Virus record (IMG/VR): IMGVR_UViG_3300027996_002186
Span: 62,001-126,000 of that record
Direction: 5' to 3' (one strand)
DNA: 64,000 nucleotides
This document shows, piece after piece, positions 2,179-62,639 of this stretch (the first letter of the stretch is position 1; every line of letters starts with the position of its first letter). Made by a program: the position numbers and the translations under genes. Below the pieces are notes generated by a model. That model had not been told where the DNA came from. It did not search any database and was given only the letters and a program-made list of their open reading frames with translations.

Positions 2179-4422
2179 TTAATCAGAAACGTCAATTAAT
2201 TCACCTACTACTTCTTTACCATCATCTGATAATGATGAAACTATAAGTTCGTATATTTTACCATTACCATCACTAAGTCTATATGATTCACCAATATTAT
2301 AGACCTCATTTGGTTTAGGTTCCTCAACAGGATTATCATTTGTTTCTGCATTATCAACACCCTCTTTTGCTTTTGTTGGTATGTCTAATTCCTTGTTTAA
2401 TTTACCTAATTCTTTTCTAGCTATTTTAACTTTTTGTGTTAATTTACCAGATCTCCAAGAATATCTAATGTCTATTATTAACCACTCACCGCTCATCCGC
2501 TCATCAAGATATGATTCTGTTGTTTCTGTTTGTGGTGTTCTTTTAGTATTTGTAAAGTTGACTTGTATTTTTTGATATTTATATATGTTAAAATTAGGTT
2601 GTGGTAATTGTAACTCGGCTGTTATTTTAACCATGTTATCTAAGTTAATTCTATTTTGTGTTTCTGAATAGAGATAATTTTCATGAACATTATCCATATC
2701 AACTCTGCCTAAAAAATTAGTTCTATAATTTTCTTTAAATGATTTTTCATCACCAGGTGCTCCCTTTAATGAGACAACATCATCCTTTTTTGTAGTTAAA
2801 GAGTCAATTTTGAATATCTGCATAATTTTTTTATTACTATCATAGTATTTGGTAATAGTAAATTGTCCCTTTTTAAGTGATTGGCTTGTTGAATTATTAC
2901 TTATTTTGTATGATGAAAAATATAAGTTGTTACTTTGATTACTCTGCTCGTTAGATAAAGCGAGGGGTATTATTTTACTCTCATCACTTTTACCCACTGT
3001 TTGTGTAGATAAACCTGATGAATCAACACCAACATCTGATGATATATCTCTATTCCATTCTTTTTCTATATCAACATAGTTAAAACACCAATAATGATCA
3101 ATATAACCTAATACAAAAGAGTCATCTGATATATATGAGTGTTTTATAATATTGGAAACAAAATCTTTAAACAACATACCTGTATTTGTCCATTTCATCG
3201 AATCTTTTGTGTTATTTATATTTGAATTAAATCCTAGTTTTAATTCTTTTGATATCATATCAAATGTATCAAATGATGTTCCGGTATATGATTTATAAGC
3301 TATTTCATAAAATTTGGGTAAGTCAATAGATCCAGATATTGTATAATTTTTCCTCTTTCTTTGAAAGGTTTTAATCTTAAATTTTAGGTGTATTGATTTT
3401 AAATTTTCAGATCCAGAATTAAGAAATATTTCAAACTTAGTATCATCAAGTGGAGCACCTTCAGCTTTCATAATACCGAGCGTATCTTTGAATGTTACAA
3501 TCACCGTTGGTGATATTCCTTCGTGATAAAGTTCAAGTGACTTAATATCCTTTTCAGGTATTTGTAGTGCATTATACCATAAAAACGGCATATAACCTTG
3601 TCCCTGTGAGTCCGTATTCTGTTGTGCGTCCTCGGTGACCTTATATTGAATTGGTGGTAATATTACTTCTGGTTTACGTATCTGTGCAATTATTGGTCTA
3701 TCTCCTTCTACTTTTACTTCATCTGGGCCACTATCATCCTGTTCTATAAGTTCATCCTCCGGTAATACTGTTATTGAAAATTCTGTGCTATCAAGATCTG
3801 GTGATGTTGGTGTTACTGCTATAATATAATCACCTGGTTTATCGAATTGTAACCCAGAAAAGTCTATTTCTCCATTGACAACTTCTTTTTCGGTAATACC
3901 AATTATAACACCTGGTCCACTTTTAACACTTAATGTTATTTTTGTATTTATAGACTTTGGATCTACTATCGCTGATGTTTGTTTATTTGATGGTTCTGGA
4001 TCGCTCTGTGGTGTGCTCTGTGTACCAGTTTGTGGTTCTTCTTCTTCTTGTTTTGGTTCCTCTGGTGCTGGCTCCCAAACCAATCTTGGTCCAATAGTAG
4101 TGCCATAGATATCATCTATGATTCCAGCCATTTCACTTAATAGTATATCAATTGCGTATTTAAGGGATCCTGGACCATCACCCGTGAAAGGAGTAATTGC
4201 TTCTTGGGTTCCCTCTATGGTAAATTCACCAATATCAACTATTTCTTGTGCTGATTTACCATCAATCGTAACACTACTATTTGTTGTGAATGGTTTGGGA
4301 AATCCATTTACGGTACCAAATACTGTTAATTTATTGAATTGGTTTTTATTATCTATTGTTCCGGTTATAGATTTCTCTGCATCTGATACAGGGTTTTTTA
4401 CGAAGAGTGACCAATTTGACAT
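2179..4422 (-). CDS. Putative baseplate hub-like protein with an N-terminal acidic/Ig-like extension
   Basis: 747 aa. C-terminal SGEWLIIDIRYSW...KVKIARKEL resembles the end of myophage hub proteins. Lies directly upstream of the tail lysozyme gene. Confidence 0.45.
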   Translation of the reverse strand: MSNWSLFVKNPVSDAEKSITGTIDNKNQFNKLTVFGTVNGFPKPFTTNSSVTIDGKSAQEIVDIGEFTIEGTQEAITPFTGDGPGSLKYAIDILLSEMAGIIDDIYGTTIGPRLVWEPAPEEPKQEEEEPQTGTQSTPQSDPEPSNKQTSAIVDPKSINTKITLSVKSGPGVIIGITEKEVVNGEIDFSGLQFDKPGDYIIAVTPTSPDLDSTEFSITVLPEDELIEQDDSGPDEVKVEGDRPIIAQIRKPEVILPPIQYKVTEDAQQNTDSQGQGYMPFLWYNALQIPEKDIKSLELYHEGISPTVIVTFKDTLGIMKAEGAPLDDTKFEIFLNSGSENLKSIHLKFKIKTFQRKRKNYTISGSIDLPKFYEIAYKSYTGTSFDTFDMISKELKLGFNSNINNTKDSMKWTNTGMLFKDFVSNIIKHSYISDDSFVLGYIDHYWCFNYVDIEKEWNRDISSDVGVDSSGLSTQTVGKSDESKIIPLALSNEQSNQSNNLYFSSYKISNNSTSQSLKKGQFTITKYYDSNKKIMQIFKIDSLTTKKDDVVSLKGAPGDEKSFKENYRTNFLGRVDMDNVHENYLYSETQNRINLDNMVKITAELQLPQPNFNIYKYQKIQVNFTNTKRTPQTETTESYLDERMSGEWLIIDIRYSWRSGKLTQKVKIARKELGKLNKELDIPTKAKEGVDNAETNDNPVEEPKPNEVYNIGESYRLSDGNGKIYELIVSSLSDDGKEVVGELIDVSD

Positions 4423-4453
4423 GAACTATATATTTGCCATCACATCTTCTGTC

Positions 4454-6058
4454 CTATAAGTTTATTTTAATTGTTTTATATGGGTATTTTCGTTTATCAT
4501 ACATACGTGCTCTCTCTTTGAAATGTCTATATAATATATTATTCATATTCTTCGGATCAAAAACATCTACTAAGTCAAATATCATAGCCTTTGTCTTATC
4601 CGTGTGTAAACGTAAGGCTCTACCAATTGATTGTATTATAATTTGCTCTGATTTGAAAGAATCTACAAATATCACATTAAATATAGCATTAATAGATACA
4701 CCAGTTGATAGTGTACCATAAGAAGCAACTAATACTCTAACTTTACCATCAGTTTCCTCCATTTGTTTCTTAATAACTTCCCTCTTTTTACCCGATACAC
4801 CACCATCAATATAATAAAATTCTTTATCTGGTAATTCCTCTGATAATTTATTCATTATCTTTTGACCATATTCAATCGTGTGAAATAATAAAAGTGTATT
4901 TGATTCACATTTATCAACTATCTTCTTGATAAAGTCTAATCTTTTATCCGAAACATGAATATATTCCTTTTCTATTTGAAAAGCTTCTTTACCATAACCA
5001 CCTTTCCTTATTTGTTCCATTCTATCTGCGAATTCTAAGTCATTATGATTCATAATGACAGCCTTTATTTCCATAGCTGATATTATACCCTTCTTCTTTA
5101 ATTCATCAGCAGAAACTTCTGTTATCTTAGGACCTAAAACTGATTGTATTGTTAGTATTTCACAAGTATCATCCTCAGGGAATGTACCAGATACACCAAA
5201 CCTTGAATATGCTTTACCAAACGTTCTCTTTAATATACTTAACATCGTTTTTGCTTTAGCTCCATGTGCCTCATCAGTAACAACTGTGTGAAATTGGTCA
5301 AAGAATTCTTTCGGCCATTTTTCTAATGATTGATAAGTTCCGATATAAATATTAGCATCTTGTGTACCTGTGTGTTTTCTTGGTCTTTCTGACATAACTT
5401 CCTCAACCCTTAAATCAAAGGGTACATGAGTTCCTTCTATATGGTCTATCTTTTTATCATCCATTTCTATTAAATTATTAACACCATGGTTATATTCTAC
5501 AATATTATCATAAAATTGAGTAACTAATGTTATCGATGGTACTATTATTAGAAATTTAGCTTTAGGAGTATGTTTAAGTGTATAAAACATAACAATTGAT
5601 ATGATTAATGATTTACCACCTGATGTAGCAACCTCAGCCATACAATATCTATTCTTTAATATTTTGTAAGCTGATTCAACTTGGTGGTCATAAGGTATAA
5701 ATGGTATCCAAGTACCATCTTTTTTCTTAACTTTATGTTCTTTAAAAAATTCTTTACAAAAATCATGAACTTTTTCTAAGGTAACATCTCTATTTAATGG
5801 GAAATCTTCTTTATTTTCTAATATAAAAGGTGCTCCGATTTCTTTACAACCTTTCAAAGCTTCTTTCCAAAGACCGATGTTTATTCTACCGTCCTTAAAA
5901 TATGATTGTTGTCCATTCCAAACACCCATCTTGAATGCTGGCATATATCGATAACCTTTAACGTGTCTAGATAACCACAAATCCATTTGGTGGTATTCGA
6001 TTCTCGTAGCTTCACTTACGACAATTTCTTCTGTTTCTTTATCATATCTAAACTTCAT
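4454..6058 (-). CDS. uvsW: UvsW-like SF2 DNA helicase
   Basis: ATSGGKS (Walker A), VPSITLVTQ, DEAH, SGT, STGVSI and QSIGRALR motifs; T4 UvsW-like layout. Confidence 0.9.
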   Translation of the reverse strand: MKFRYDKETEEIVVSEATRIEYHQMDLWLSRHVKGYRYMPAFKMGVWNGQQSYFKDGRINIGLWKEALKGCKEIGAPFILENKEDFPLNRDVTLEKVHDFCKEFFKEHKVKKKDGTWIPFIPYDHQVESAYKILKNRYCMAEVATSGGKSLIISIVMFYTLKHTPKAKFLIIVPSITLVTQFYDNIVEYNHGVNNLIEMDDKKIDHIEGTHVPFDLRVEEVMSERPRKHTGTQDANIYIGTYQSLEKWPKEFFDQFHTVVTDEAHGAKAKTMLSILKRTFGKAYSRFGVSGTFPEDDTCEILTIQSVLGPKITEVSADELKKKGIISAMEIKAVIMNHNDLEFADRMEQIRKGGYGKEAFQIEKEYIHVSDKRLDFIKKIVDKCESNTLLLFHTIEYGQKIMNKLSEELPDKEFYYIDGGVSGKKREVIKKQMEETDGKVRVLVASYGTLSTGVSINAIFNVIFVDSFKSEQIIIQSIGRALRLHTDKTKAMIFDLVDVFDPKNMNNILYRHFKERARMYDKRKYPYKTIKINL

Positions 6059-6559: not shown

Positions 6560-6592
6560 AAAAAACCCACTCAAATATGAGTGGGTTTTTTT
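6560..6592. terminator. Bidirectional rho-independent terminator
   Basis: A6-CCCACTCA-aata-TGAGTGGG-T7 between convergent genes. Confidence 0.85.
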
Positions 6593-9072: not shown

Positions 9073-10269
9073 ATGGATAAGGGATATATAAAAAATATGA
9101 TACAGAAGATTCTTGATAAAGAGTTTTCTCATAAACAGAAGCGTCGTCTTAATGATTATCACGATAGACTTAACATGGCTTGTCCTTATTGTGGTGATAG
9201 TCACCGTCACAAACATTCTAAGAGAGGCAATCTCTATTTCAATAGATTATTCTATATTTGCTTCAACTGTGATAAGAAGACTACCTTAGACAAGATGTGT
9301 AGGGATTTCAATGAGCAAATTGATCCAGGTAAGAAATTAGAAATGATTGAGCACTTAGATAGTGTCATGACTTATAATGATTACGAAAATGAGTTTGTAG
9401 ATGCTCAATTTGATAATCTAATTGATATGGAAGATCTTGAAGCAGCTTTCGCTTCTGATATAACTCCCATAAATGACTTCCAACCTATTAAGGTTAATGG
9501 TGGTATTTATAAGTACCTTATTGGTAGAGGAATAGGTCCCGAATTACATAAAAATATTTATCAAGCAAAGTATCACAAAAACGAAAACGAAAGTGAGTGG
9601 ATAATAGCTATGTTAAATAGAAGAGGTGATAAGATAATTGGAATGCAAGTCAGAAACCTTAAAGGTGGTAGACGAAGAATGTTCAAGATATACAATTATG
9701 AGAATCTATTAGAGTGGGTTAATCATGGTAAAGAAGAGCCTCTTAATATAGATATGGGTGAGATGGTTATTTATAATAAATTATCATACTATTTTAATAT
9801 ATTGAATGTTAACTTCGAAAAAAGAATAACCGTATTTGAGGGTTATTTAGATTCTTTATTCTATCCAAATTCAATAGGTTTGGTTGGTGTAAATACTGAT
9901 TATAGATTTTTGGAGAATAATGGATTTGATATACAATATTTCTTTGATAATGATGAAGCTGGTTTTAATAAGTCAGAAGAAAAAATGAATGATGGGTTTT
10001 CTGTCTTCTTGTGGAGAAAATTATTAAACGATATAGTTGATAAAAAGAATTCGACAGATCCATATAAGCTATTCCATAGAATAGTTAAGGTCAAAGATAT
10101 AAATAAATTGGCTGAGTTAGTACCAAATCCCTATAAGGCTCTTAAATTACCTGATTATTTTAGCACAGATGTTCTTGATGTTAAATGGATACCTAAAATG
10201 AATAAAGGTAAGTGGGTAGAAAGAGAAACTGATTATAACAAGAAATTTGATAATTTTAATAGATTATGA
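9073..10269 (+). CDS. DNA primase (T4 gp61-like)
   Basis: Zn finger CPYCGDS...CFNC, TOPRIM motifs FEGYLDSLF and FFDNDEAG, and KDIN. Confidence 0.9.
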   Translation: MDKGYIKNMIQKILDKEFSHKQKRRLNDYHDRLNMACPYCGDSHRHKHSKRGNLYFNRLFYICFNCDKKTTLDKMCRDFNEQIDPGKKLEMIEHLDSVMTYNDYENEFVDAQFDNLIDMEDLEAAFASDITPINDFQPIKVNGGIYKYLIGRGIGPELHKNIYQAKYHKNENESEWIIAMLNRRGDKIIGMQVRNLKGGRRRMFKIYNYENLLEWVNHGKEEPLNIDMGEMVIYNKLSYYFNILNVNFEKRITVFEGYLDSLFYPNSIGLVGVNTDYRFLENNGFDIQYFFDNDEAGFNKSEEKMNDGFSVFLWRKLLNDIVDKKNSTDPYKLFHRIVKVKDINKLAELVPNPYKALKLPDYFSTDVLDVKWIPKMNKGKWVERETDYNKKFDNFNRL

Positions 10270-10314
10270 ATTGGCATGGTGTGTGTTAATACAGGTAGTT
10301 GAGTTATTTATATA

Positions 10315-10622
10315 TGATAAAAGATGAATTGATACAAATAAAAATATCCAATAAAACACTCTCATATTATTTGAATATTAAAGAGAGGTATCATCAACAT
10401 TAATACAAGATGGATCTGGTATTTTAATAACAGGAATATGTGATTTTTGTGGGAATGAAAAGTTAATAAGTAAGAAAAAATATAACACACAAACCAAGTT
10501 TTCTAAGTTGGGATTCTCCTGTTCCAAACCAAACAGAACATTCTATAATGAACGAAAGGGGTTATTATCGGATATTTGATTGTGGGTCTAAAAAGTGGAT
10601 TAGGAAATTTAAATATCTTTAG
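10315..10622 (+). pseudogene. Decayed homing-endonuclease-like gene
   Basis: Three out-of-frame pieces: MIKDELIQIKISNKTLSYY, then GICDFCGNEKLI...FSCSK, then TEHSIMNERGYYRIFDCGSKKW. These resemble the N- and C-terminal motifs of mobile endonucleases of large phages. Confidence 0.6.
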
Positions 10623-11092
10623 ATAATTATATTACCTTTATTTATATACTTTTTATTTTTAGTAAAAAGAAATGACTTAAATTCTTTATTTCCTCTTTCT
10701 GCATTACAATCTTTACAACAAACAACTAGATTTACTTGACAATTATTACCACCTTCTGATATGGGTACTATATGATCCGCCGTAGCGTTTTCATAACTTA
10801 ACTTTTCTTCACAATATAAACAAAGGCTACCTTTGTTTTTATTTATGAAATCTTTAGCGAATCCGCTAGTTCTTCTTTTAACATTTTTACCGCTATATTT
10901 TAGTCCGACCACAACAAAGTCTTTCATATATTTGAATTTTTTCCTATATATCTCACAAGATTTATAGTTCTTATTTACAATGACTACCAACTTTATTAAA
11001 AATTTCCATCTGTTGTATGTTTTCTTTTCTACTGAGAGAAAATGTGGGTGTTCCGATTTTACTAGGAATTTTATTACTTTTATTACTTTCAT
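10619..11092 (-). CDS. HNH endonuclease
   Basis: CLYC...TADHIVPISEGG...NLVVCCKDCNAERGN. Confidence 0.85.
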   Translation of the reverse strand: MKVIKVIKFLVKSEHPHFLSVEKKTYNRWKFLIKLVVIVNKNYKSCEIYRKKFKYMKDFVVVGLKYSGKNVKRRTSGFAKDFINKNKGSLCLYCEEKLSYENATADHIVPISEGGNNCQVNLVVCCKDCNAERGNKEFKSFLFTKNKKYINKGNIII

Positions 11093-13249: not shown

Positions 13250-14008
13250 ATGCTAAATTATAAAGAGTATTTAAAGGAGGCCCAAGATAATCAAGTCGTT
13301 GTGTTGGATGATGGACAAGGTGGTAATATGTTTAAGACTGTTAAAAATGGTAGTAAGAACTCAATTACTTATCTTAATGCTGTTATAAAAAGGTTTATCG
13401 AAAGTGTTTATGGATCATCTGGGTTTGTTTATGGTAAACATACTGATATATTTATCGATAATAAGATAATTAATGGTGAGTATATATCAAAGATGGTTAA
13501 TAATTACACCATTTTTAAAAATGTGATAAGAATTAATAATATTAAAGAGGAAGAATCTTTTTATAATTTTATGTTATCTAATCTGAATAATATTTATTCA
13601 CCAAATGGTAAATTCTTTTTAGAACAATCATTACCTATTTTAATAAACACAACTAGAAGGGGAAATGTACTTGAAAAAATGGCTAAGGAATCCTTTTTAA
13701 AGTATTCTAAAGAAAAAGATATCGAGATTACTATACAAAACCCTTCTGTTGATGAAGATATAAACGGTGTTGATTTCAAATTCTTATCCAATGGTAGAAG
13801 TTTTACTGTTCAAGTAAAGCCATTTACTGATTATAAGTATATTGGTGATAAAATTTTCATAAAGACAGAAGGATCTTTATCATTGAATACAAACTACTTG
13901 ATACTATGTGATGGTAAGAATTGTATTAAATTAAGAAATACACCCTCTAATCCAGTTAAAATAAAAGGTAATACTTTTATTTCAAGTAAATCTAATCTAC
14001 TTATTTAA
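13250..14008 (+). CDS. Putative PD-(D/E)xK-fold nuclease-like protein
   Basis: G-x2-LE helix followed by DINGVDF...TVQVK; N-terminal tag MLNYKEYLKE. Confidence 0.45.
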   Translation: MLNYKEYLKEAQDNQVVVLDDGQGGNMFKTVKNGSKNSITYLNAVIKRFIESVYGSSGFVYGKHTDIFIDNKIINGEYISKMVNNYTIFKNVIRINNIKEEESFYNFMLSNLNNIYSPNGKFFLEQSLPILINTTRRGNVLEKMAKESFLKYSKEKDIEITIQNPSVDEDINGVDFKFLSNGRSFTVQVKPFTDYKYIGDKIFIKTEGSLSLNTNYLILCDGKNCIKLRNTPSNPVKIKGNTFISSKSNLLI

Positions 14009-15462
14009 ATCCACCGAATATATCCATTACCACACTCAATCTTCTTGTTATTTCTGGCATACCTAATGGTTCAATAATAGAATTAATTGGTGATAGTATT
14101 GATTTCTCAAATTGTATATCATAATCTATCTCAGGAGCAAATTCAATCGGGTAAGACCCTCTAGCATAAGCAAATGTGGAATTAACTGATTTATCTTTAC
14201 AGATATAATATTTAATCTTTGTACCAGATTTCATAAATTCATACTTATCTTGTAATTTCTTATCATTGTTCAATAAGTAATTATGATAAGCGGCCGCTTT
14301 AACAGCAAAGTGAGCTCCACTTATAAATTGTAATGGTAATGTTTTATCATTTAAAACTTTCTCATCATATTTATTACAAGATGATTGCATTGCGATATCA
14401 TCAACATCAGCCAATTCAAATTCCTTTCTAAGACCTTTTACCAATTTAAGTAAATCCTTTATATTGAATGTATCGGGATTCTCAAATAAATACTCTACTA
14501 TCCCAACAATCTTATCACGAGCAAAGGCTGGTGTGGATGACCTAACAAGTTCAACTCCTTTAGGATAAATATATTTCAATCTATCATATGGAATACCATC
14601 CTCATATAAAATATGTTGTATGTATTTTTTCTTAGCAATATTTATAATTGATTCTGATATTCTTTCAAGTTCAAAATCTTCTTTGTTTTCAACACCATAT
14701 GATTCTGCGTGTTTATCTAAACAATCTTTGAAGTAACCCTCATATTTTATTTGGTCAACTCCTAATATAAAATCAACCTCAGTAGACCAGTTCCAGATAA
14801 TATCATTTGTTAAAACTCCATCATCTATCATCTTATTTAACTTCCTATCTTTCACGAAGTTACCATCTATTAAAACTAACCCATAATCTTCTTTCAGAAG
14901 TTCTGTAAATTCCGTGATATCTTTTGACATACCCAAATAATTTGGATTATCTGTTTCTATCAAATCTCTTGATAGTATAATAAATTTCTTATCAATTGAA
15001 GATAGATATTCATCGTTAAATACTTGATCTCTCCAAGTACAATGGTCCATACAAGGTTTGAATGAAACAAAAATTGAATCGGTATCACCATAGATACTAA
15101 CATCCTCTTTCGTATCAATTGGTGTGATATCTTTTATATTTAATTGTTTGTGTAGCTCAGTATCAAGATGCCATTGATTATACCAATAATCTTGGTTATC
15201 ATCATCCATCTTTCTAGTCAATTCTCTACCCTCTGCTGTTATAGTACCTGCAACGTGGTTGTTATAAAGTATGAAGTATGGTGTTGCGAAGGCTCCATAA
15301 GAACCATTCAATACAAGTTTTAGTCATTTACCCCCACTTAAAATAAAGCGGGGGTGATTAAAGAGCGAGTTGAAGGGCATTGTAGTAATCTACTTCCTTT
15401 TTCAACTCGCTCGCTTTAATTTTTAATGACTCGATTTTTTTTATTTTTTCGGTTTTTGTCAT
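14001..15462 (-). CDS. Family B DNA polymerase, C-terminal subunit of a split gene, interrupted by a 40-nt gap at 15321-15360
   Basis: ORF1 15462-15361 (MTKTEK...YYNALQLAL*) plus ORF2 from 15320 (KLVLNGSYGAF...YGDTDS...KKKY...KGVELVRSSTP) together rebuild motif B QLALKLVLNGSYG and motif C. No exonuclease domain or motif A is present in the window. Confidence 0.9.
15321..15412 (-). other. Candidate programmed translational bypass element in polB
   Basis: CTT TAA TCACCCCCGCTT-TATTTT-AAGTGGGGGT AAATGA CTA AAA, plus a perfect 12-bp inverted repeat at 15363-15374 / 15401-15412. Confidence 0.7.
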
Positions 15463-15527: not shown

Positions 15528-15614
15528 ATGATAAAGGAAGAAAAAGTTTCAGTAAAAATCGGACCACGTAACATAAAATATTTTAATATGTGTGGATATG
15601 ATGTTACACTTTAG
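15528..15614 (+). pseudogene. Truncated N-terminus of a homing-endonuclease-like gene
   Basis: MIKEEKVSVKIGPRNIKYFNMCGYDVTL*, similar to the N-terminus of the remnant at 10315. Confidence 0.45.
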
Positions 15615-15664
15615 TCAGGCGCAATTTGGTCAGATAACAGAACTATACGCCTATATGGTATTTG

Positions 15665-15986
15665 TTATGCTGATTGATAACCACTTATATTCTCACCATC
15701 ATAATAGTCGATACCTATCCAATTTTCATAATCTTCTACATTCACGTTTATATAATTCCCATTGTGGTAATAATTCACCAGGTATAATAATAAACAATAT
15801 AGGATCTGCCATTAGCTCTGTACCTCTTTTAACCTTTGTTTGTTTTGATTTTAATTTTACAATATCAACCTTTGATACATTATCAACTCCATATCTCTCT
15901 AAACAGGTTTCTTTTATTTTAGATATGATTGATTTTTTATTTATCTTATATTGATTATAGTAATGGAAATAGTAGTAACCTATCAC
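15665..15986 (-). pseudogene. Frameshifted homing-endonuclease-like remnant
   Basis: KIKETCLERYGVDNVSK repeat motif and WELYKRECRRL, continuing in another frame as YENWIGIDYYDGE before a stop. Confidence 0.55.
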
Positions 15987-16457: not shown

Positions 16458-17360
16458 TTAATAGATAATTGGTCCATCAAACCCCAAACGAACATTTTGA
16501 CCATCAAACACAATTGTTTCCGTTATCTCAGAAGGCTTAAATGTATTTTTGTGATAAACTTTCATTGGTCTTCTAAAGTCTTCTTCTGGTGGAGTATAGA
16601 CATAATTAAAACACTCACATCCACCACCCGTTCTTTTCCAAGACTTGGTTAAAAAAAAGTTATCACCTATTAATTCCTTTATGTGAAAATAAATATAATT
16701 CTCTTTTGAGTATTCATTGATAGGCATTAAAGATACTAAACCAATATCATTTATCTCAACAGAGTTTGCCCATTCTAAATATTTAAATACTTCTTCTGGT
16801 GTATCTATATAATTCTTTATTAAGTTACATCTGAATTGTACTTGGTGTGGATGTGTTTGTAAATGGCTTATAGCCTTTATCTCTTCTGATGTAGGAGTTT
16901 TGCATTTGAATATCTCATCATTAATCTTATCATCATAGTGGTGACGACTAAGTTGTATATAATCATATCTTTTAGCAATAGGGTCGTTAAATAACTTCTC
17001 CCATCTAAATCCGTCTGTATTCAGTGATAATTCACAATCAGGTGCATATTCCACACCAACATTGGACATTTCCAGAAAATTATCCCAATATAAAGTTGGT
17101 TCTCCACCAGAAATGGCTATTTTTCTAATCTTAATTCTATCTGATATATGTTGTAAGACTTCTTTATATTTTTTACCGTTCCATTTGGATGCGTCTGAGT
17201 GATATGTACAGAATGAGCACTTAGCGTTACAGAATTTAGTTCTAACATAAAGATTTATATAAGGTTCTTCAATGGCGTTTCCCTCCTCCTCTCCAAATAA
17301 GGCACAATTATGAGTTATTAGCTTAATTTCTTTCCCGAATAATTCGATTGATTCTAACAT
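16458..17360 (-). CDS. Radical SAM protein
   Basis: CNAKCSFC (CxxxCxxC), SGGEPTL, NTDG. Confidence 0.9.
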   Translation of the reverse strand: MLESIELFGKEIKLITHNCALFGEEEGNAIEEPYINLYVRTKFCNAKCSFCTYHSDASKWNGKKYKEVLQHISDRIKIRKIAISGGEPTLYWDNFLEMSNVGVEYAPDCELSLNTDGFRWEKLFNDPIAKRYDYIQLSRHHYDDKINDEIFKCKTPTSEEIKAISHLQTHPHQVQFRCNLIKNYIDTPEEVFKYLEWANSVEINDIGLVSLMPINEYSKENYIYFHIKELIGDNFFLTKSWKRTGGGCECFNYVYTPPEEDFRRPMKVYHKNTFKPSEITETIVFDGQNVRLGFDGPIIY

Positions 17361-17370
17361 TATTTATTTA

Positions 17371-17631
17371 TTAACAAGATGATCTTGAATATGATGAATC
17401 ATCGTTTCGAAATCTCGAAATTGATGATTTTGGTGTTGGTGTTACTTTTTTATTAATTCGTGGCTCGATATCATTTTCGATACAAAACTTTATATAAACA
17501 GATCTTTTCAAATCGCCTGTGTTTATTAAATCTTCACAAGCATCATTAAATTTTGATTCAAGGTTAGTACCTTCATATCTACCTTTGTAGAATTGTAAAA
17601 GTTTTGCTAAAAGTTCTAATTGTTGGTCCAT
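17371..17631 (-). CDS. Hypothetical protein
   Basis: 86-aa ORF between nadR and the radical SAM gene, with a Ser/Arg-rich C-terminus ending in Cys. Confidence 0.55.
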   Translation of the reverse strand: MDQQLELLAKLLQFYKGRYEGTNLESKFNDACEDLINTGDLKRSVYIKFCIENDIEPRINKKVTPTPKSSISRFRNDDSSYSRSSC

Positions 17632-17649
17632 TGTGAATTCTTATTTTAG

Positions 17650-18669
17650 TTATATATTAAATTGTGAATTTACAATTTCAATAGATTTGCTTAATCTATC
17701 TCTCCAATTACCACCCACTTCTATATAATTACAATTGTACTTTTCCAATTCTGATTTAATAACATTATAATGTTCCATCCTTTCTTCTAAAAACTGTCGT
17801 GTTCCGTCTTGAACACCATCACAATCAGGTTTCAATAGTAAGTATAAATCATAATTACTATTTTTATATACTTTATCTAGTAATATGTTTTCAATACTTT
17901 TATAACCATTTGGAAAATACATTTTTGAGAAGAGGTATGTTGTTATATCCTCTGTATCACAGAATAATAATTTATTGGATGTCTTTATTTTTTGATTTTC
18001 CAATTCTTGTCGACCAACAGATATTGGGATAAAGTCTTCTATTCCTATTTTATTACCATTTCTTTCAAATACAGTTCTGCCATATTCCTCAACAAAATTT
18101 GTGTTATAGTATTTAGCTAAATTTTCACTCATTGTTGATTTCCCAACAGATTCCGGCCCCATAATAACAATTCTCTTAACGAAGTAGGGTTTTATTTCAT
18201 CCGGTATAAATTCCCAACTATCAAAGGGGTTAGTTCTTACTTTAGTTCCTGATATAGGAAATTTCTTTCTTTCTTTATCAACTAGATAGTGTTTTATACC
18301 CAAATATTTAGCAAAATCATCACCGTAATTCTCAGAAGTGAATACACAATCTAATTTACCAACAAATTTATAAACAAATGGAACCCAATAAGAATAAAAT
18401 TCATCAAGTGATTTACATTCGTGTTCATATTGTGGCATCTCACTATCATCAACAGAGTGTATTATGACATTTGGGTTACTTTCATATATTTCTCGTAAAG
18501 ATTTTACTCTTAATTTACCAGGGATTGTTTGTGTAGGATTATGACAAGCTAAAACATGAACAACTTCCGAATTTTCCAAAGCGGTGTCTATTAAATAAAG
18601 GTGCCCGGTGTGTAATCCGTAGAATTTACCCAATACTAAACTACTTTTGTACTTTTTATCCATTTCCAT
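17650..18669 (-). CDS. nadR: NadR-like NMN adenylyltransferase / ribosylnicotinamide kinase (no HTH domain)
   Basis: GKFYGLHTGH (HxGH), ISGTKVR, P-loop GPESVGKST, EYGR, CDTE, DGTR. Confidence 0.9.
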   Translation of the reverse strand: MEMDKKYKSSLVLGKFYGLHTGHLYLIDTALENSEVVHVLACHNPTQTIPGKLRVKSLREIYESNPNVIIHSVDDSEMPQYEHECKSLDEFYSYWVPFVYKFVGKLDCVFTSENYGDDFAKYLGIKHYLVDKERKKFPISGTKVRTNPFDSWEFIPDEIKPYFVKRIVIMGPESVGKSTMSENLAKYYNTNFVEEYGRTVFERNGNKIGIEDFIPISVGRQELENQKIKTSNKLLFCDTEDITTYLFSKMYFPNGYKSIENILLDKVYKNSNYDLYLLLKPDCDGVQDGTRQFLEERMEHYNVIKSELEKYNCNYIEVGGNWRDRLSKSIEIVNSQFNI

Positions 18670-19184
18670 AATCCAATTGATGCTAATATTAAGAATAAAC
18701 CATATACATATGATGATACGTCTAAGCCATTTGATGAGAATAATACTATTAATAGAATGTCATTTATAATCCAAAGAATCCAAGCTTCTATTTTCTTCTT
18801 CACTAATAGGAATGTAGCCATAACACCCAATGTCATTACAGCAGAGTCTAGAAATGGCATATTACCACCATATTCACTTGTTATACAAAACGTGGTCATG
18901 TATAGAATAATGGTGCTGGTTGTTAGATATCCTAATTGCTTTTTATTTAACCAACTAATAGCCAATTCTTCTTTTGGTTTGCTCCAGTTTATCCAACCTA
19001 GTATAGATTGGACTAGAAATACACCTTGTAAAACTAAATCACCAAGTAAGTTATGGTTGTAAAAGATAACAGAGTAAAAGATAACTCCTACGATACCAAA
19101 TGGCCAACATAATATGTTATCTTTTACTGTTAGAATAACAGCTAGTAACGTGAATAAAACAGCTACTGCCTCAATAATATCCAT
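18636..19184 (-). CDS. pnuC: PnuC-family nicotinamide riboside/vitamin transporter
   Basis: Multi-pass membrane protein with WPFGI, GWINW, PFLDS and EAWILWIIND motifs; overlaps nadR. Confidence 0.9.
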   Translation of the reverse strand: MDIIEAVAVLFTLLAVILTVKDNILCWPFGIVGVIFYSVIFYNHNLLGDLVLQGVFLVQSILGWINWSKPKEELAISWLNKKQLGYLTTSTIILYMTTFCITSEYGGNMPFLDSAVMTLGVMATFLLVKKKIEAWILWIINDILLIVLFSSNGLDVSSYVYGLFLILASIGLWKWIKSTKVV

Positions 19185-21166
19185 TAAATCTTAAATTTAA
19201 TTGTAGCGAAGAAGTTGAATGGTGGATTAACAAAGAAGTGTCTATCTGTACCAACTGCGTATCCATTAGTGTAATAACTTTCATTAGTTATGTTATTTAC
19301 TCTAATACTTAAACTGTGTTGTTTATAGAATTTATAATCAACTTGAGCATTTAATACCACAAAATCTGGTGTTGTGAGTGTGTTCTCCATATCAATATAA
19401 GACTCTGAGTGGTACTTCACATCAAATCCAACTCTTATTCTATCTTTTGAATCTTTAATCACCACACCTTGGTTAATTATCAAATTAGGTGTGTATAATG
19501 GACTAAATTCTTTCCCATCATCATTAATTCTGTTATAAGAGTATGATGATGTATTAACTAATAATAAGTTAATTTTCTTTTTACTAAATAAACTTAAAGT
19601 CATATCTAATTCAATACCACTTCTAAAAGAGTTTTCAACATTAGTCATTAACGGTAAACCATTTGAACCAATTGCTCCTAATAATGTTATTTCATTTTTG
19701 AAATCCATATAGTATAGATTACCTTGTAACTTAAAGTTATCTAATGTTATATTAGTACCTAATTCATAATCAACAACCGATTCTGGTTTAACATCTATGT
19801 AACTAATAGGATCATCTTCTCCCATAAAAATATCATTTCTTGTTGGTTCTCTTTGTGATTGACCAACAGAAGCATAGAAGTTATAGTGTTTACATTTCGT
19901 GAACATTATACCACCTTTTGGGTTGAAGAATGTCCATTCAAATGGTGCCATATCCATAGTACCTTGATACTTGAAATCAACGTATCTAACTTGAGCATCT
20001 CCGAAAAGAGTAAACTTCTTTATATCATATCCGAATTTAACAAATGATGATACTTCGTTTTTAAGTCCTTTATTAGAATATAGTTCATCTGTGTTTGCTA
20101 ATACAGTCATAGCATGTCGTCTATCATACATATTACCACTAACACCAATATTCAATCTATATTTATTACCAGTTAAGTTATAGTTAGAGGTTAATCCATA
20201 GAAGTTAGAACCTAAATTGAAGTTAAGAACATCATCCCCTCCACCAAGTGGTAGTAAATCTAATCCCCAATCTCCATCTAATCTATTATAGAAAGCGGTA
20301 GTCGTTAAATTTGACTTGTTAAAAAAGTGTTTGTGTTTTAAGATAACCATACTTTGTGTAAAGTCGTCATTTTCTCTAGTAGTATTATAGTTAGTTCTTG
20401 GTTCTGATTTTATATCATCTTCTGAAACTGCGAACCAAGCCATTTCATTAGTTGTGTGTCCATTGAATGCTGTTATTTTAACAAAATCCTTTTCTCCATA
20501 ATAACCACCACTTAAAAAGAATGATTGTCCTTCACCACCTGAGTTATATTTGTATCCATCACTCGCGTAATTTGAATATCTAGTATAAAAGGCTGTTTTA
20601 TTTTTTAGTAATCCTGTTGAGTTTTCAATACTAACTCTATAAGTATTAAATGATCCATATCCAATTTGTCCTTCTGTTCCTTTCTTTAATCCCGTTGGTG
20701 ATTCAAAATTAATAGAACCAGCATATGAGGAAACACCGTTTGTTGATGTACCAACACCACGTTGTATCTGCATTGACCTAATTGAGTTTGTAAAATCTGG
20801 GTAATTTGAGAAATATACACCTTGGTCCTCTGGTTCATTAAGAGGAACCCCATCGAGTGTCATATTAATTCTAGTTTGGTCAATACCTCTCAATCTAAAG
20901 TAAGTATATCCCATATTGTGACCGCCATCTGTTGATGATGTTACACTTGGTGTTGTGTTTAATAACAACGGTAATTCTTGTGTATGATACATAACATCTA
21001 TATCATCTTTACTGATTGTTTTCTGAGTGACTGGTGTTTTAGATCCAGCTCTAATTCCTTGTATAGTAACTTCTTCAATTTGCACCATTGATGTGTCAAC
21101 CTTTAGAGTATCCTGTGAATACGATGTTGATGTTGCTAATAAAAATAAAAATAGTAATTTCTTCAT
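19184..21166 (-). CDS. TonB-dependent outer-membrane receptor (Bacteroidota vitamin-receptor type)
   Basis: Signal peptide; plug motifs RLRGIDQTRINMTLDGVPLNEPE and IQRGVGTSTNG; barrel end NNITNESYY...FFATIKFKI; coupled to pnuC by a TAATG overlap. Confidence 0.9.
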   Translation of the reverse strand: MKKLLFLFLLATSTSYSQDTLKVDTSMVQIEEVTIQGIRAGSKTPVTQKTISKDDIDVMYHTQELPLLLNTTPSVTSSTDGGHNMGYTYFRLRGIDQTRINMTLDGVPLNEPEDQGVYFSNYPDFTNSIRSMQIQRGVGTSTNGVSSYAGSINFESPTGLKKGTEGQIGYGSFNTYRVSIENSTGLLKNKTAFYTRYSNYASDGYKYNSGGEGQSFFLSGGYYGEKDFVKITAFNGHTTNEMAWFAVSEDDIKSEPRTNYNTTRENDDFTQSMVILKHKHFFNKSNLTTTAFYNRLDGDWGLDLLPLGGGDDVLNFNLGSNFYGLTSNYNLTGNKYRLNIGVSGNMYDRRHAMTVLANTDELYSNKGLKNEVSSFVKFGYDIKKFTLFGDAQVRYVDFKYQGTMDMAPFEWTFFNPKGGIMFTKCKHYNFYASVGQSQREPTRNDIFMGEDDPISYIDVKPESVVDYELGTNITLDNFKLQGNLYYMDFKNEITLLGAIGSNGLPLMTNVENSFRSGIELDMTLSLFSKKKINLLLVNTSSYSYNRINDDGKEFSPLYTPNLIINQGVVIKDSKDRIRVGFDVKYHSESYIDMENTLTTPDFVVLNAQVDYKFYKQHSLSIRVNNITNESYYTNGYAVGTDRHFFVNPPFNFFATIKFKI

Positions 21167-42131: not shown

Positions 42132-42153
42132 AATTAAGATTAATAAGAATAAT

Positions 42154-42188
42154 AAAAAAACCCACTCAAAATTTGAGTGGGTTTTTTT
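42154..42188. terminator. Bidirectional terminator
   Basis: A7-CCCACTCAAA-a-TTTGAGTGGG-T7 between convergent genes. Confidence 0.85.
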
Positions 42189-42221
42189 ATTATTGTCTAT
42201 CCCCAATAGGTCGCCTAGTAT

Positions 42222-43479: not shown

Positions 43480-43508
43480 AAAAAACCCTCGAAATTCGAG
43501 GGTTTTTT
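43480..43508 (-). terminator. Terminator after the tail sheath gene
   Basis: A6-CCCTCGAA-a-TTCGAGGG-T6. Confidence 0.8.
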
Positions 43509-51494: not shown

Positions 51495-51523
51495 GGAAAA
51501 AAACAGGAAATAGTTAATATATT

Positions 51524-51551
51524 AAAAAACCGGGATATTTCCCGGTTTTTT
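51524..51551 (+). terminator. Rho-independent terminator
   Basis: A6-CCGGGA-tatt-TCCCGG-T6. Confidence 0.85.
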
Positions 51552-51663
51552 AATTTTAAATAATTTTTTTTATTTACATAGTCGATTTTATTAAAAAAAA
51601 GAGGGCGGTATAATTTTCTATAAAAAATGTCGAATATATAAAGATGTAAATAATTATTAAATT

Positions 51664-61595: not shown

Positions 61596-62639
61596 ATGAT
61601 AGGTGAAAGATTTAATATGGAGGATGTTTTCTTCCGAGATTTAACAGTTTGTGTTCTTGATACCTTAGAAGGTCAAGTTAATTGGGTTAATAGATTTTCT
61701 TCTGGGGATGTTTATGTAAAAGTACCTTTTTATTACTCATTGACGGGTGATGAGAGGTTTTTATTGGATACATTTCAGGATGATGTGGTTTCTGAAAATA
61801 GATTTGTTGAATTAAACACCGATATTATACCAAGGGGTCACATAACAATGACTGGATTTAATATTAATTCTGATGAATTCTCCAATCCTAATGTTTGGTT
61901 GAGAATGGTTGTCGAGAATGAGGTTGAGATAAGAAAGATTTTAGCTAAAGTTAGAGCAGTTCCTATTACTGTTAGTTATGATTTGGAAATATTACTTTCT
62001 AGTGAAGTAGATACGTTCAAGTGTAGTCAGGCAATAATGGATACTTTATGGTTATATAAATTTATGTATTTTGAGCATAACTTTATGAATATAGATGCTG
62101 TTATATTAATGCCAGATGGTAATTCAATAGAAATGGCACGTGAAAAAAATATGTCTTCTGATAATAATATTAAGATGAAGGTCTCATTTGAGGTACAAAC
62201 ATATTATCCAGCTTTTAGAAAAGATAGATATAATGGTGTGGGTTATCCTAGGAATTATGGTGATGGTATGACTGATTTAAATGGTCATACAATAGTAGAT
62301 GGGTTTTCGGAGGGATTTGGTACTGATAACCCATCGAATTCTCCTGGACCGTTCGCGCCCGGAGGTGGTACTAATAACGTACCGAATTCTCCTTATGATT
62401 ATATTGGTGGTCTAGATCCTAATATTAATACTGGTACTACACCATATGGTGCTACTGGTAATTATACATACATTCAAAATCCTAATGGTTCCGGTGATCC
62501 TGATTATTATATCACACCTAAAAGAACTAGATGGTTTAATAATATACTAAGAGCTAGACAAAAATCTAGTATACCAATAAATAACCCAAATTCACAAGAT
62601 CCTAATAATGGATCATCAGGAAATCCTTACACTCCGTAA
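61596..62639 (+). CDS. Tail completion / sheath stabiliser (gp15-like) with a low-complexity C-terminal tail
   Basis: VPFYY, IIPRG, AVPITVSYDLEI, FEVQTYYP; likely start ATG 61596. Confidence 0.55.
   Translation: MIGERFNMEDVFFRDLTVCVLDTLEGQVNWVNRFSSGDVYVKVPFYYSLTGDERFLLDTFQDDVVSENRFVELNTDIIPRGHITMTGFNINSDEFSNPNVWLRMVVENEVEIRKILAKVRAVPITVSYDLEILLSSEVDTFKCSQAIMDTLWLYKFMYFEHNFMNIDAVILMPDGNSIEMAREKNMSSDNNIKMKVSFEVQTYYPAFRKDRYNGVGYPRNYGDGMTDLNGHTIVDGFSEGFGTDNPSNSPGPFAPGGGTNNVPNSPYDYIGGLDPNINTGTTPYGATGNYTYIQNPNGSGDPDYYITPKRTRWFNNILRARQKSSIPINNPNSQDPNNGSSGNPYTP

Follow-up and report, generated by a model that had tools for sequence, protein, structure and literature searches.

A hairpin-forming 40-nt insert in motif B of a huge phage DNA polymerase gene, one of a family of inserts that ribosomes most likely bypass

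Overview

A 40-nt insert with the potential to form a GC-rich hairpin interrupts the catalytic motif B of the family B DNA polymerase gene of a huge phage. It is one of a family of such inserts in related phages, and the anatomy of the family suggests that translating ribosomes jump over them. If so, this would be a second natural phage system of translational bypassing beside that of T4 gene 60, to which it is not homologous. That one polypeptide is made from an unspliced mRNA is an inference from sequence comparison, without protein or RNA evidence, though bypassing is the explanation favored here with reasonable, not high, confidence. The DNA analysed, here termed the window, is 64,000 nt long (positions 62,001 to 126,000 of IMG/VR record IMGVR_UViG_3300027996_002186).

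The interrupted polymerase cistron

The polymerase of this huge-phage clade is naturally split, and its C-terminal cistron starts 34 codons before motif B. On the minus strand of the window, ATG 15462 opens these 34 codons (15462-15361; MTKTEK...YYNALQLAL), which encode the start of the fingers helix and the Gln of motif B and end with Leu CTT at 15363-15361. The coding gap, 15360-15321, follows directly. It consists of a TAA stop codon (15360-15358), a spacer of 2–3 nts, a hairpin, an A-rich tail with TGA (15326-15324) closing the downstream frame, and the triplet CTA (15323-15321). The hairpin, ACCCCCGCTT/TATTTT/AAGTGGGGGT at 15355-15330, has a 10-bp stem with a C5/G5 core, a 6-nt loop and one G.U pair, which exists only on the sense strand. 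Decoding in the resumed frame (15320-14001) would begin at AAA, the motif B Lys, and continue through LVLNGSYG, YGDTDS and the thumb domain to the stop at 14001. Removal of exactly 40 nts restores QLALKLVLNGSYG. Alignment of the protein of the gapless relative to a herpesvirus family B polymerase structure (7luf_A) confirms this as KxxxNSxYG, with YGDTDS downstream. The initial annotation, which proposed a 40-nt hop from Leu CTT to Leu CTA within motif B, was exact in its description of the layout.

The arrangement is more than chance. The hairpin is the only one of C5...G5 type in the 64 kb window, where the chance expectation is 0.00–0.01, and the 81-nt and 183-nt regions fold with z = -4.6 and z = -7.15, respectively. 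In the two closest public relatives, LR745206.1 and LR756502.1, the same cistron is uninterrupted at exactly this point. Open reading frame prediction, however, reports a 34-residue ORF plus a truncated ORF starting at TTG 15311, which would lose the Gln and Lys, and if bypassing occurs the polymerase genes of these huge phages are miscalled.

A family of inserts at motif B

The initial annotation predicted that relatives would include gapless alleles together with gapped alleles which keep the layout of Leu codon, stop, hairpin and Leu codon, with covarying stems. This prediction was met. There are 16 gapless and 29 gapped distinct alleles, the latter with gaps of 36–48 nts at six neighboring codons of motif B. 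Gap length modulo 3 is 0, 1 and 2 in 9, 12 and 8 alleles, respectively, and two alleles (L039 and L041 of the sequences compared) differ by one G inside the gap, so the insert cannot be read as codons. All inserts fold (dG -17 to -31 kcal/mol), often with a GNRA or UUCG loop, and the stem starts a fixed 5–6 nts after the last sense codon. The stem covaries, with a score of 0.429 against 0.150 for shuffles, none of 500 of which was as high. The G.U pairs and the nature of the loops point to sense-strand RNA.

An in-frame stop codon is present at codon +1 or +2 in 23 of 29 gapped alleles. It is at +1 in 4, as in the window, at +2 in 19 and absent in 6, and where it is at +2 the A-site codon is an ordinary sense codon such as UUU. 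The last triplet of the gap matches the take-off codon in its first two bases in 22 of 29 alleles. Away from the Tyr site the match, which is in codon phase, holds in 20 of 20 alleles at five different codons (Ala, Leu, Val, Gly and Ser), and elements with the same hairpin carry GCA/GCT at the Ala site and CTA at the Leu site. However, the 2–3 nt flank matches could partly be insertion microhomology, and CUU and CUA are read by one tRNA only if it has a U34-type anticodon (no tRNA gene is in the window, and the host is unknown). At the Tyr site, 7 of 9 alleles end the gap with AAC, AGC, CAA or GAC, at best near-cognate for tRNA-Tyr. Either re-pairing is not strictly needed or the mechanism differs there.

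Structure 5′ of the gap

A 5′ stem-loop made of coding sequence (15420-15357) ends at the take-off codon. In the minimum free energy fold 15412-15401 pairs with 15374-15363, and the helix is extended by pairing of 15420-15415 with 15362-15357, which covers the take-off CUU and the UAA. It is specific to gapped alleles (-26.2 kcal/mol against -9.0 for gapless, p = 1.7e-7) and moves with the take-off site. In gapped alleles 89.9% of cells are paired, with 6 compensatory pairs, while in gapless alleles pairing is 46.1%, the same as for shuffles.

A closing helix, which would generate a three-way junction, is predicted for the window between AGUCAUU (15431-15425, codons Glu-Ser-Leu) and AAUGACU (15328-15322, the end of the gap including the CU of the landing codon). 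Compensatory versions exist in L059, L044 and L039, but the helix is absent in about a third of Leu/Ala-site alleles and a covariation test in which tails were swapped was not significant overall (-4.8 against -4.3 kcal/mol). It is, accordingly, only a prediction for a subset of alleles. The Ser codon TCA at this spot, 22 residues before the take-off Leu, is in 22 of 29 gapped and 0 of 14 gapless alleles.

An adjacent homing endonuclease gene

An HNH homing endonuclease gene of the DUF7487 / phrog_3339 family, with a C-terminal HNH-like motif, is just upstream in 17 of 29 gapped and 0 of 14 gapless alleles (Fisher 1.5e-4), though the association is weak once phylogeny is taken into account (sign test p about 0.25). 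In near-identical gapped/gapless pairs the endonuclease gene and the mini-insert are two separate insertions about 150 bp apart. In the window only a scrambled remnant is left (15528-15944), with residues 1–27 at 15528-15611 on the plus strand and residues about 220–322 at 15944-15671 on the minus strand. A PDB sequence search with the endonuclease gave nothing useful.

Inferred mechanism and origin

With CUU in the P site, UAA is in the A site and the hairpin, starting 5–6 nts further on, would be at the mRNA entrance and block decoding. The inference is that peptidyl-tRNA-Leu then lets go of CUU and that the ribosome slides about 37 nts over the hairpin, potentially helped by refolding of the 5′ stem-loop behind it. 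Re-pairing to CUA at 15323-15321 and resumption at AAA would yield one polypeptide with intact QLALKLVLNGSYG (the junction peptide would be EVDYYNALQLALK). The phage shows no use of Shine Dalgarno sites (1 of 55 ORFs), so the G-run cannot be assumed to guide landing as the GAG does in T4. By analogy with T4 mobA/gene 60, the insert may travel with, or have been selected by, the free-standing endonuclease. Interruption of the conserved motif B DNA that such an enzyme would recognise would make the carrier genome immune, while bypassing would keep the polymerase intact. A fuller reading, which is somewhat more likely than not, is of a previously undescribed family of bypass elements that works in a translation system without Shine Dalgarno sites. 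It would be driven by the take-off hairpin at the mRNA entrance together with the 5′ stem-loop and, in the window, by a three-way junction bringing the landing codon next to the take-off codon. It would tolerate non-cognate landing triplets in some lineages, and spread with, and protect against, the endonuclease.

Alternative explanations

Removal of the insert from the mRNA by an unknown hairpin-guided endonuclease plus RNA ligase, as a kind of unconventional mini-intron, is unlikely though it is the strongest of the alternatives. The insert is precisely delimited, strongly structured and covarying, its ends pair with each other in some alleles (for example GCU...AGC in L026), splicing would not need the cognate landing triplet that Tyr-site alleles lack, and RNA repair enzymes may well be common in huge phages. 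However, there is no bulge-helix-bulge or twin-loop geometry, and the 3′ boundary is a variable 8–17 nts from the stem while the 5′ boundary is fixed, which is unlike structure-measured cleavage. Splicing explains neither the in-frame stops nor the codon-phased matches at five sites. The inserts are too short for group I or II introns, and the only Rfam hit is a chance miRNA match (E = 0.53, far below the gathering score). Synthesis of the C-terminal piece as two polypeptides, a 34-residue peptide and the rest, which assemble non-covalently is also unlikely. The polymerase of this clade is already split, both flanks are under selection and the window has the in-frame TTG at 15311, but starting there removes the motif B Lys. 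Most alleles have no in-frame ATG, GTG or TTG near the resume codon, Tyr-site alleles would lose the whole motif, and the break points fall inside KxxxNSxYG at six different codons. Nor does the model explain the matched codons, the fixed spacing or the 5′ stem-loop.

That the interrupted copy is non-functional or decaying is very unlikely, though the neighboring endonuclease gene is a pseudogene and the rest of the genome, about 600 kb, was not examined. Purifying selection on both sides of the gap equals that in gapless alleles (pN/pS upstream is 0.26 in gapped against 0.35 in gapless alleles, and downstream 0.18 against 0.16). Gapped alleles span 56–100% protein identity and dominate the clade, and each contig, including one of 483 kb, gave one polB-C locus. 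An assembly or sequencing artefact can be all but discounted. The identical 40 nts are in contigs from four JGI metagenomes, one of them from a diverged strain with differences in the flanks, and were confirmed directly in a Logan assembly of SRR3719506 and in ENA ERZ23491336 (identical copies are in L005-L012, L070 and L071). The allele is listed in 69 assembly blocks, and no gapless version with these flanks exists in the JGI metagenome contigs. Programmed frameshifting does not fit, as gap lengths cover all three phases and the 9 that are in frame contain stops. Initiation at ATG 15328 with a +1 slip on AAAA fails because the ATG is out of frame in every allele that has it and missing in many, and reinitiation lacks conserved in-frame start codons. 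Reading TGA 15326 as Trp extends the downstream frame only into unrelated sequence (…NHPRFILSGGKW…) and does not rejoin QLAL. The hairpin lacks the T-run of an intrinsic terminator, and the true terminators in the window look different.

Relationship to known bypassing and split polymerase genes

Efficient long-range bypassing is established for only two natural systems, the T4 gene 60 cassette and yeast mitochondrial byps. No description of a polymerase bypass was found in the literature searched, from which many subscription papers were missing. With the 50-nt gene 60 bypass and its MobA homing endonuclease cassette (Huang 1988; Bonocora 2011; Manning & Atkins 2022, bioRxiv 10.1101/2022.08.31.505936), the element shares a short non-coding gap about 35–45 codons into the second cistron of a split essential replication enzyme, a take-off codon followed by a stop, a stable hairpin with GNRA/UUCG-type loops, a 5′ stem-loop of upstream coding sequence, and a neighboring HNH endonuclease gene which often decays while the gap is kept. 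Insertion has recurred at nearly the same site. The layout also matches the stop or slow codon, AU-rich 3′ part and wobble-variant codon pairs described by Manning & Atkins. However, they found the gene 60 cassette only in topoisomerase genes, and the gap sequence and peptide are unrelated. The gap here is 36–48 nts, the hairpin starts 5–6 nts after the take-off codon rather than containing it, take-off is at six codons rather than two, the stop is often at codon +2, the phage uses no Shine Dalgarno sites and some alleles lack a cognate landing triplet. In most relatives the endonuclease gene is transcribed divergently. If bypassing is confirmed, the 29 or so natural variants would constitute a ready-made mutational series for bypassing requirements and would show that pairing of a homing endonuclease with a bypass insert protecting its target site is a recurrent evolutionary solution. 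The element, 40 nts plus synonymous upstream codons, would then be compact and portable.

The mitochondrial byps of Magnusiomyces capitatus (Lang et al. 2014) are 27–55 nt GC-rich hairpin inserts in an AT-rich genome. They too have an AU-rich 3′ part and take-off and landing triplets that mostly match, are in essential genes, behave as mobile elements and are in a translation system without Shine Dalgarno sites. They are, however, multi-copy (81 copies in 12 genes), whereas here there is a single site per genome, with no other copy in the 64 kb window, in about 400 kb of related loci, or elsewhere in viral contigs, two pattern scans of which returned only polB loci. The phage element, in addition, is linked to a homing endonuclease and has a 5′ stem-loop.

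Separate N- and C-terminal polymerase cistrons, with mobile genes at the split, are a feature of Chryseobacterium phage MA9V-2 and, it appears, of T4-related phages (gp43A/gp43B of Aeh1-like phages; Petrov et al.). Those splits give separately translated subunits with their own start codons, while the 40-nt gap offers no in-frame start codon and is inside a catalytic motif. Within the present clade the N and C cistrons are more than 250 kb apart in LR756504 and LR756501. The N-terminal half is not in the window, where 19184-21166 is a TonB-dependent receptor.

The interrupted polymerase gene and its genome

The initial annotation, which had proposed a 40-nt hop inside motif B of the phage DNA polymerase, is borne out at the level of sequence. 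On the minus strand, ATG 15462 opens a 34-codon ORF (MTKTEK...EVDYYNALQLAL) that ends with CTT 15363-15361 and TAA 15360-15358. Five bases later comes the hairpin ACCCCCGCTT-TATTTT-AAGTGGGGGT (15355-15330), and this is followed by AAATGA, CTA (15323-15321) and AAA CTT GTA TTG AAT GGT TCT TAT GGA. The downstream frame is closed by TGA 15326-15324 and runs to 14001, though mechanical ORF calling starts it at TTG 15311. Pfam and PHROGs identify the 436-residue ORF as the C-terminal part of a family B DNA polymerase, and a gapless relative aligns with a herpesvirus polymerase structure (7luf_A) over KxxxNSxYG and YGDTDS. The gap therefore lies between the Leu and the catalytic Lys of motif B. The hairpin is the only one of the C5...G5 type in the 64 kb window. 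[Bidirectional terminator-like hairpins, with an A-run, a GC stem such as CCCACTC and its complement, and a T-run, lie between genes at 6560-6591, 42148-42194, 43480-43508 and 51521-51554, but are clearly different from the polymerase hairpin.]

The closest public records are uncultured huge phages of 630-735 kb, LR745206.1 (84% protein identity) and LR756502.1 (69%). The polymerase of this clade is naturally split. Its N-terminal half is not in the window, and in LR756504 and LR756501 the two halves lie more than 250 kb apart. The cultured Chryseobacterium phage MA9V-2 (OR513085.1, 149314-155537) also has two cistrons, separated by three genes including one for a TnpB-family RNA-guided endonuclease, and its motif B (QKTMMNSIYG) is uninterrupted. 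In every relative the C-terminal cistron starts at M-T-K-x-E-K, 24 residues before DYYN, and ATG 15462 is therefore a true start and not a fragment. The genes of the window have A/T-rich leaders and essentially no Shine-Dalgarno motifs (1 of 55 ORFs against a background of 10.7%), which is typical of Bacteroidota-type translation.

In LR745206.1 and LR756502.1 the cistron reads straight through ...YYNALQLALKLVLNGSYG..., and the window differs by exactly 40 nt. The identical 40 nt occur in four IMG/VR contigs from four metagenomes, one of them a strain with changes in the flanks. The exact downstream ORF is indexed in 69 blocks of the public assembly collection, and Logan SRR3719506 and ENA ERZ23491336 have the same insert. 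A scan of JGI metagenome contigs for the window-specific gapless junction found nothing.

A family of inserts

Fifty-nine related loci from viral contigs (designated here by L numbers), together with the two GenBank relatives and the window, give 45 distinct junction sequences, of which 16 are gapless and 29 are gapped. The gaps are 36-48 nt long, with length mod 3 of 0, 1 and 2 in 9, 12 and 8 alleles respectively. Two otherwise identical alleles, L039 (2944-2991) and L041 (2948-2994), differ by one G in the G-run of the hairpin's 3′ arm (42 against 41 nt), a natural length polymorphism inside the gap. The gaps sit after six neighbouring codons of QLA|L|KLV|LNG|S|Y|G, with 5 distinct gapped alleles at the Ala site, 10 at the Leu site (including the window), 2 at Val, 2 at Gly, 1 at Ser and 9 at Tyr.

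Every gap contains a stable hairpin (dG -17 to -31 kcal/mol, z -3.5 to -11) with a C4-5/G4-5 base and a variable inner stem, and the loops are often GNRA (GAAA, GUAA, GCAA) or UUCG. RNAalifold finds 10 pairs, 7 of them with compensatory double changes. The covariation score is 0.429, against 0.150 +/- 0.026 for shuffles (0 of 500 as high) and at most 0.123 for slid controls. Stems are longer on the sense strand because of G.U pairs, which points to the structure being selected in the mRNA.

Features tied to the reading frame

The stem begins a fixed 5-6 nt after the last sense codon. An in-frame stop lies at codon +1 in 4 alleles, including the window, and at codon +2 in 19, while the six exceptions carry one-base variants of a stop there. 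The last triplet of the gap shares its first two bases with the take-off codon, in codon phase, in all 20 alleles at the Ala, Leu, Val, Gly and Ser sites, the pairs being GCT>GCA/GCT, CTT>CTA, GTT>GTA/GTT, GGT>GGT and TCT>TCA. Elements with the same hairpin carry GCA or GCT when placed after Ala and CTA when placed after Leu. Gapless alleles use CTT, CTA, TTA or TTG for that Leu. No cognate dinucleotide occurs in the 3′ tails of these 20 alleles before the landing triplet. Such properties are expected if a peptidyl-tRNA leaves one codon and re-pairs with another, but are not needed for RNA excision.

A 5′ structure specific to gapped alleles

The coding RNA from the ATG to the take-off codon folds much more strongly in gapped alleles than in gapless ones, with mean dG of -26.2 against -9.0 kcal/mol and z of -4.6 against -0.3 (Mann-Whitney p = 1.7e-7). 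The 3′ arm of the stem ends at the take-off codon. At the Leu and Ala sites, GAGCGAGYUG (codons Ser-Glu-Leu) pairs with CARCUCGCUC (Gln-Leu-Ala-Leu), and the window has the compensatory UUG/CAA version. On an ungapped alignment of 14 gapped alleles this helix is 89.9% paired, with six pairs changed on both sides and covariation of 0.270 against 0.120 +/- 0.018 for shuffles (0 of 500), whereas on 15 gapless alleles the same columns are 46.1% paired, no better than shuffles. At the Tyr, Ser and Gly sites a different helix (GAGUCAUUAAG with CUUAAUGGNUC) does the same job, so the stem moves with the take-off site. This corresponds to the 5′ stem-loop of T4 gene 60, which is thought to refold behind the ribosome and favour forward movement.

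For the window, the 183-nt fold (MFE -57.1 kcal/mol, z -7.15) is a predicted three-way junction. In it a closing helix pairs 15431-15425 with 15328-15322, the end of the gap including the CU of the landing codon. Though L059, L044 and L039 have compensatory versions of that helix, about a third of Leu/Ala-site alleles lack it and it is treated here as a prediction. The Ser codon TCA inside that motif is present in 22 of 29 gapped and 0 of 14 gapless alleles (Fisher 1.5e-6), and in phylogenetically independent pairs it goes the same way in about 5 and the opposite way in 0.

Use of the gene

Over the 25 codons upstream of the sites pN/pS is 0.26 in gapped and 0.35 in gapless alleles, and over 25 codons downstream it is 0.18 and 0.16. 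Each contig, including that of 483 kb, gave a single polB-C locus. The gene is in use.

Inferred mechanism and alternatives

The best-supported reading is programmed translational bypassing, and it is more likely than not that ribosomes really hop here. In this model the ribosome pauses with CUU in the P site, because UAA is in the A site and the hairpin sits at the mRNA entrance. The peptidyl-tRNA detaches from CUU, the ribosome slides about 37 nt, the tRNA re-pairs with CUA, and decoding resumes at AAA. The hop, the part played by each element and the protection of the endonuclease target are inferences from anatomy and from the T4 precedent. The codon pair of the window is synonymous rather than identical, and so needs a U34-type tRNA-Leu. 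In most alleles an ordinary sense codon occupies the A site with the stop one codon later, and there is no Shine-Dalgarno usage to guide landing. Seven of nine Tyr-site alleles end the gap in AAC, AGC, CAA or GAC, which are at best near-cognate for tRNA-Tyr. Published work notes latitude in P-site re-pairing and ‘even larger deviations’ in mitochondrial byps, but the Tyr-site triplets remain unexplained. In the Tyr-site lineage of L025-L028 and L031 the first triplet of the gap (GUU/GCU/GUC) tends to be complementary to the last (AAC/AGC), and in L028 and L031 the stem extends to 16-20 bp and includes the take-off codon UAU. This suggests that the ends of the gap are brought together there by pairing rather than by a cognate landing codon.

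Excision of the insert at the RNA level is unlikely, though in the absence of RNA data it is not excluded; it lacks any ribozyme signature and does not explain the frame-linked features. Separate translation of the two parts, also unlikely, lacks start codons and would cut a catalytic motif at six different places. Decay of the gene is contradicted by the pN/pS values, and an assembly artefact by the recurrence of the identical insert in the IMG/VR contigs and the Logan and ENA assemblies.

The system, as inferred, works like T4 gene 60 and resembles mitochondrial byps in having a GC hairpin in an AT-rich genome without Shine-Dalgarno sites. It is not a member of the gene 60/MobA cassette family, as the host gene differs, there is no sequence similarity, the hairpin is placed differently and there are multiple take-off codons. 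The 2022 survey by Manning & Atkins (bioRxiv 10.1101/2022.08.31.505936) found gene 60-type cassettes only in topoisomerase genes, and no description of bypassing in a polymerase gene or in huge phages was found in the literature searched.

Mobile context and neighbouring genes

On a tree of the 180 residues downstream of motif B, the gapped or gapless state changes at least 12 times (8 changes being forced by well-supported branches) and the insertion site changes 22 times. L017 (Ala site) and L021 (Tyr site) have identical downstream protein. Near-identical pairs such as L026/L023 and L027/L024 differ by two separate insertions about 150 bp apart, one being a gene of 0.9-1.5 kb directly upstream of the cistron's ATG and the other the mini-insert. 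That gene belongs to DUF7487 / phrog_3339 (‘homing endonuclease’) and has repeated LEKYGV modules and a C-terminal HNH-like motif. It is present next to 16 gapped alleles plus the window and next to none of the gapless ones (Fisher 1.5e-4). However, independent pairs go the same way in only about 3 and the opposite way in 0, which is of low power, and the association is weak once phylogeny is taken into account. A GIY-YIG/NUMOD3 endonuclease takes its place in one gapped and one gapless allele. In the window the HNH gene is a scrambled remnant, with residues 1-27 at 15528-15611 on the plus strand and residues about 220-322 at 15944-15671 on the minus strand. Manning & Atkins describe the same pattern for T4-type cassettes, with pseudogenised or lost endonucleases where the bypass is retained, and replacement by GIY-YIG enzymes. 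The context is like that of T4 mobA/gene 60.

A second endonuclease spot in the window comprises an HNH endonuclease ORF at 10619-11092 (minus strand) and, at 10314-10483 (plus strand), a fragment similar to the N-terminus of the DUF7487-type endonuclease; it sits next to a primase-like gene (9073-10269). In several relatives the polB-C ORF is interrupted again further downstream (L039, L041 and L042 at about 3550-4830; L048, L053, L055 and L064-L066 downstream of about residue 190). The ORFs stop after 182-191 residues and the tblastn match resumes 0.5-1.9 kb later, whereas L054 has one unbroken 598-residue ORF. These look like further introns, inteins or endonuclease insertions, so the gene is a hot spot for mobile elements.

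Seven relatives, probably mostly gapless ones, carry a phage-encoded homologue of translation initiation factor IF-3 (Pfam IF3_N + IF3_C) directly upstream of the polymerase cistron, at loci such as L022, L050, L043 and L049 (ORFs of about 172-176 residues). On the minus strand of the window, 16458-21166 holds a run of metabolic and host-like genes, namely those for a radical SAM protein (16458-17360), a NadR-like NMN adenylyltransferase/kinase (17650-18669), a PnuC NMN transporter (18636-19184) and a TonB-dependent receptor with plug and barrel domains (19184-21166).
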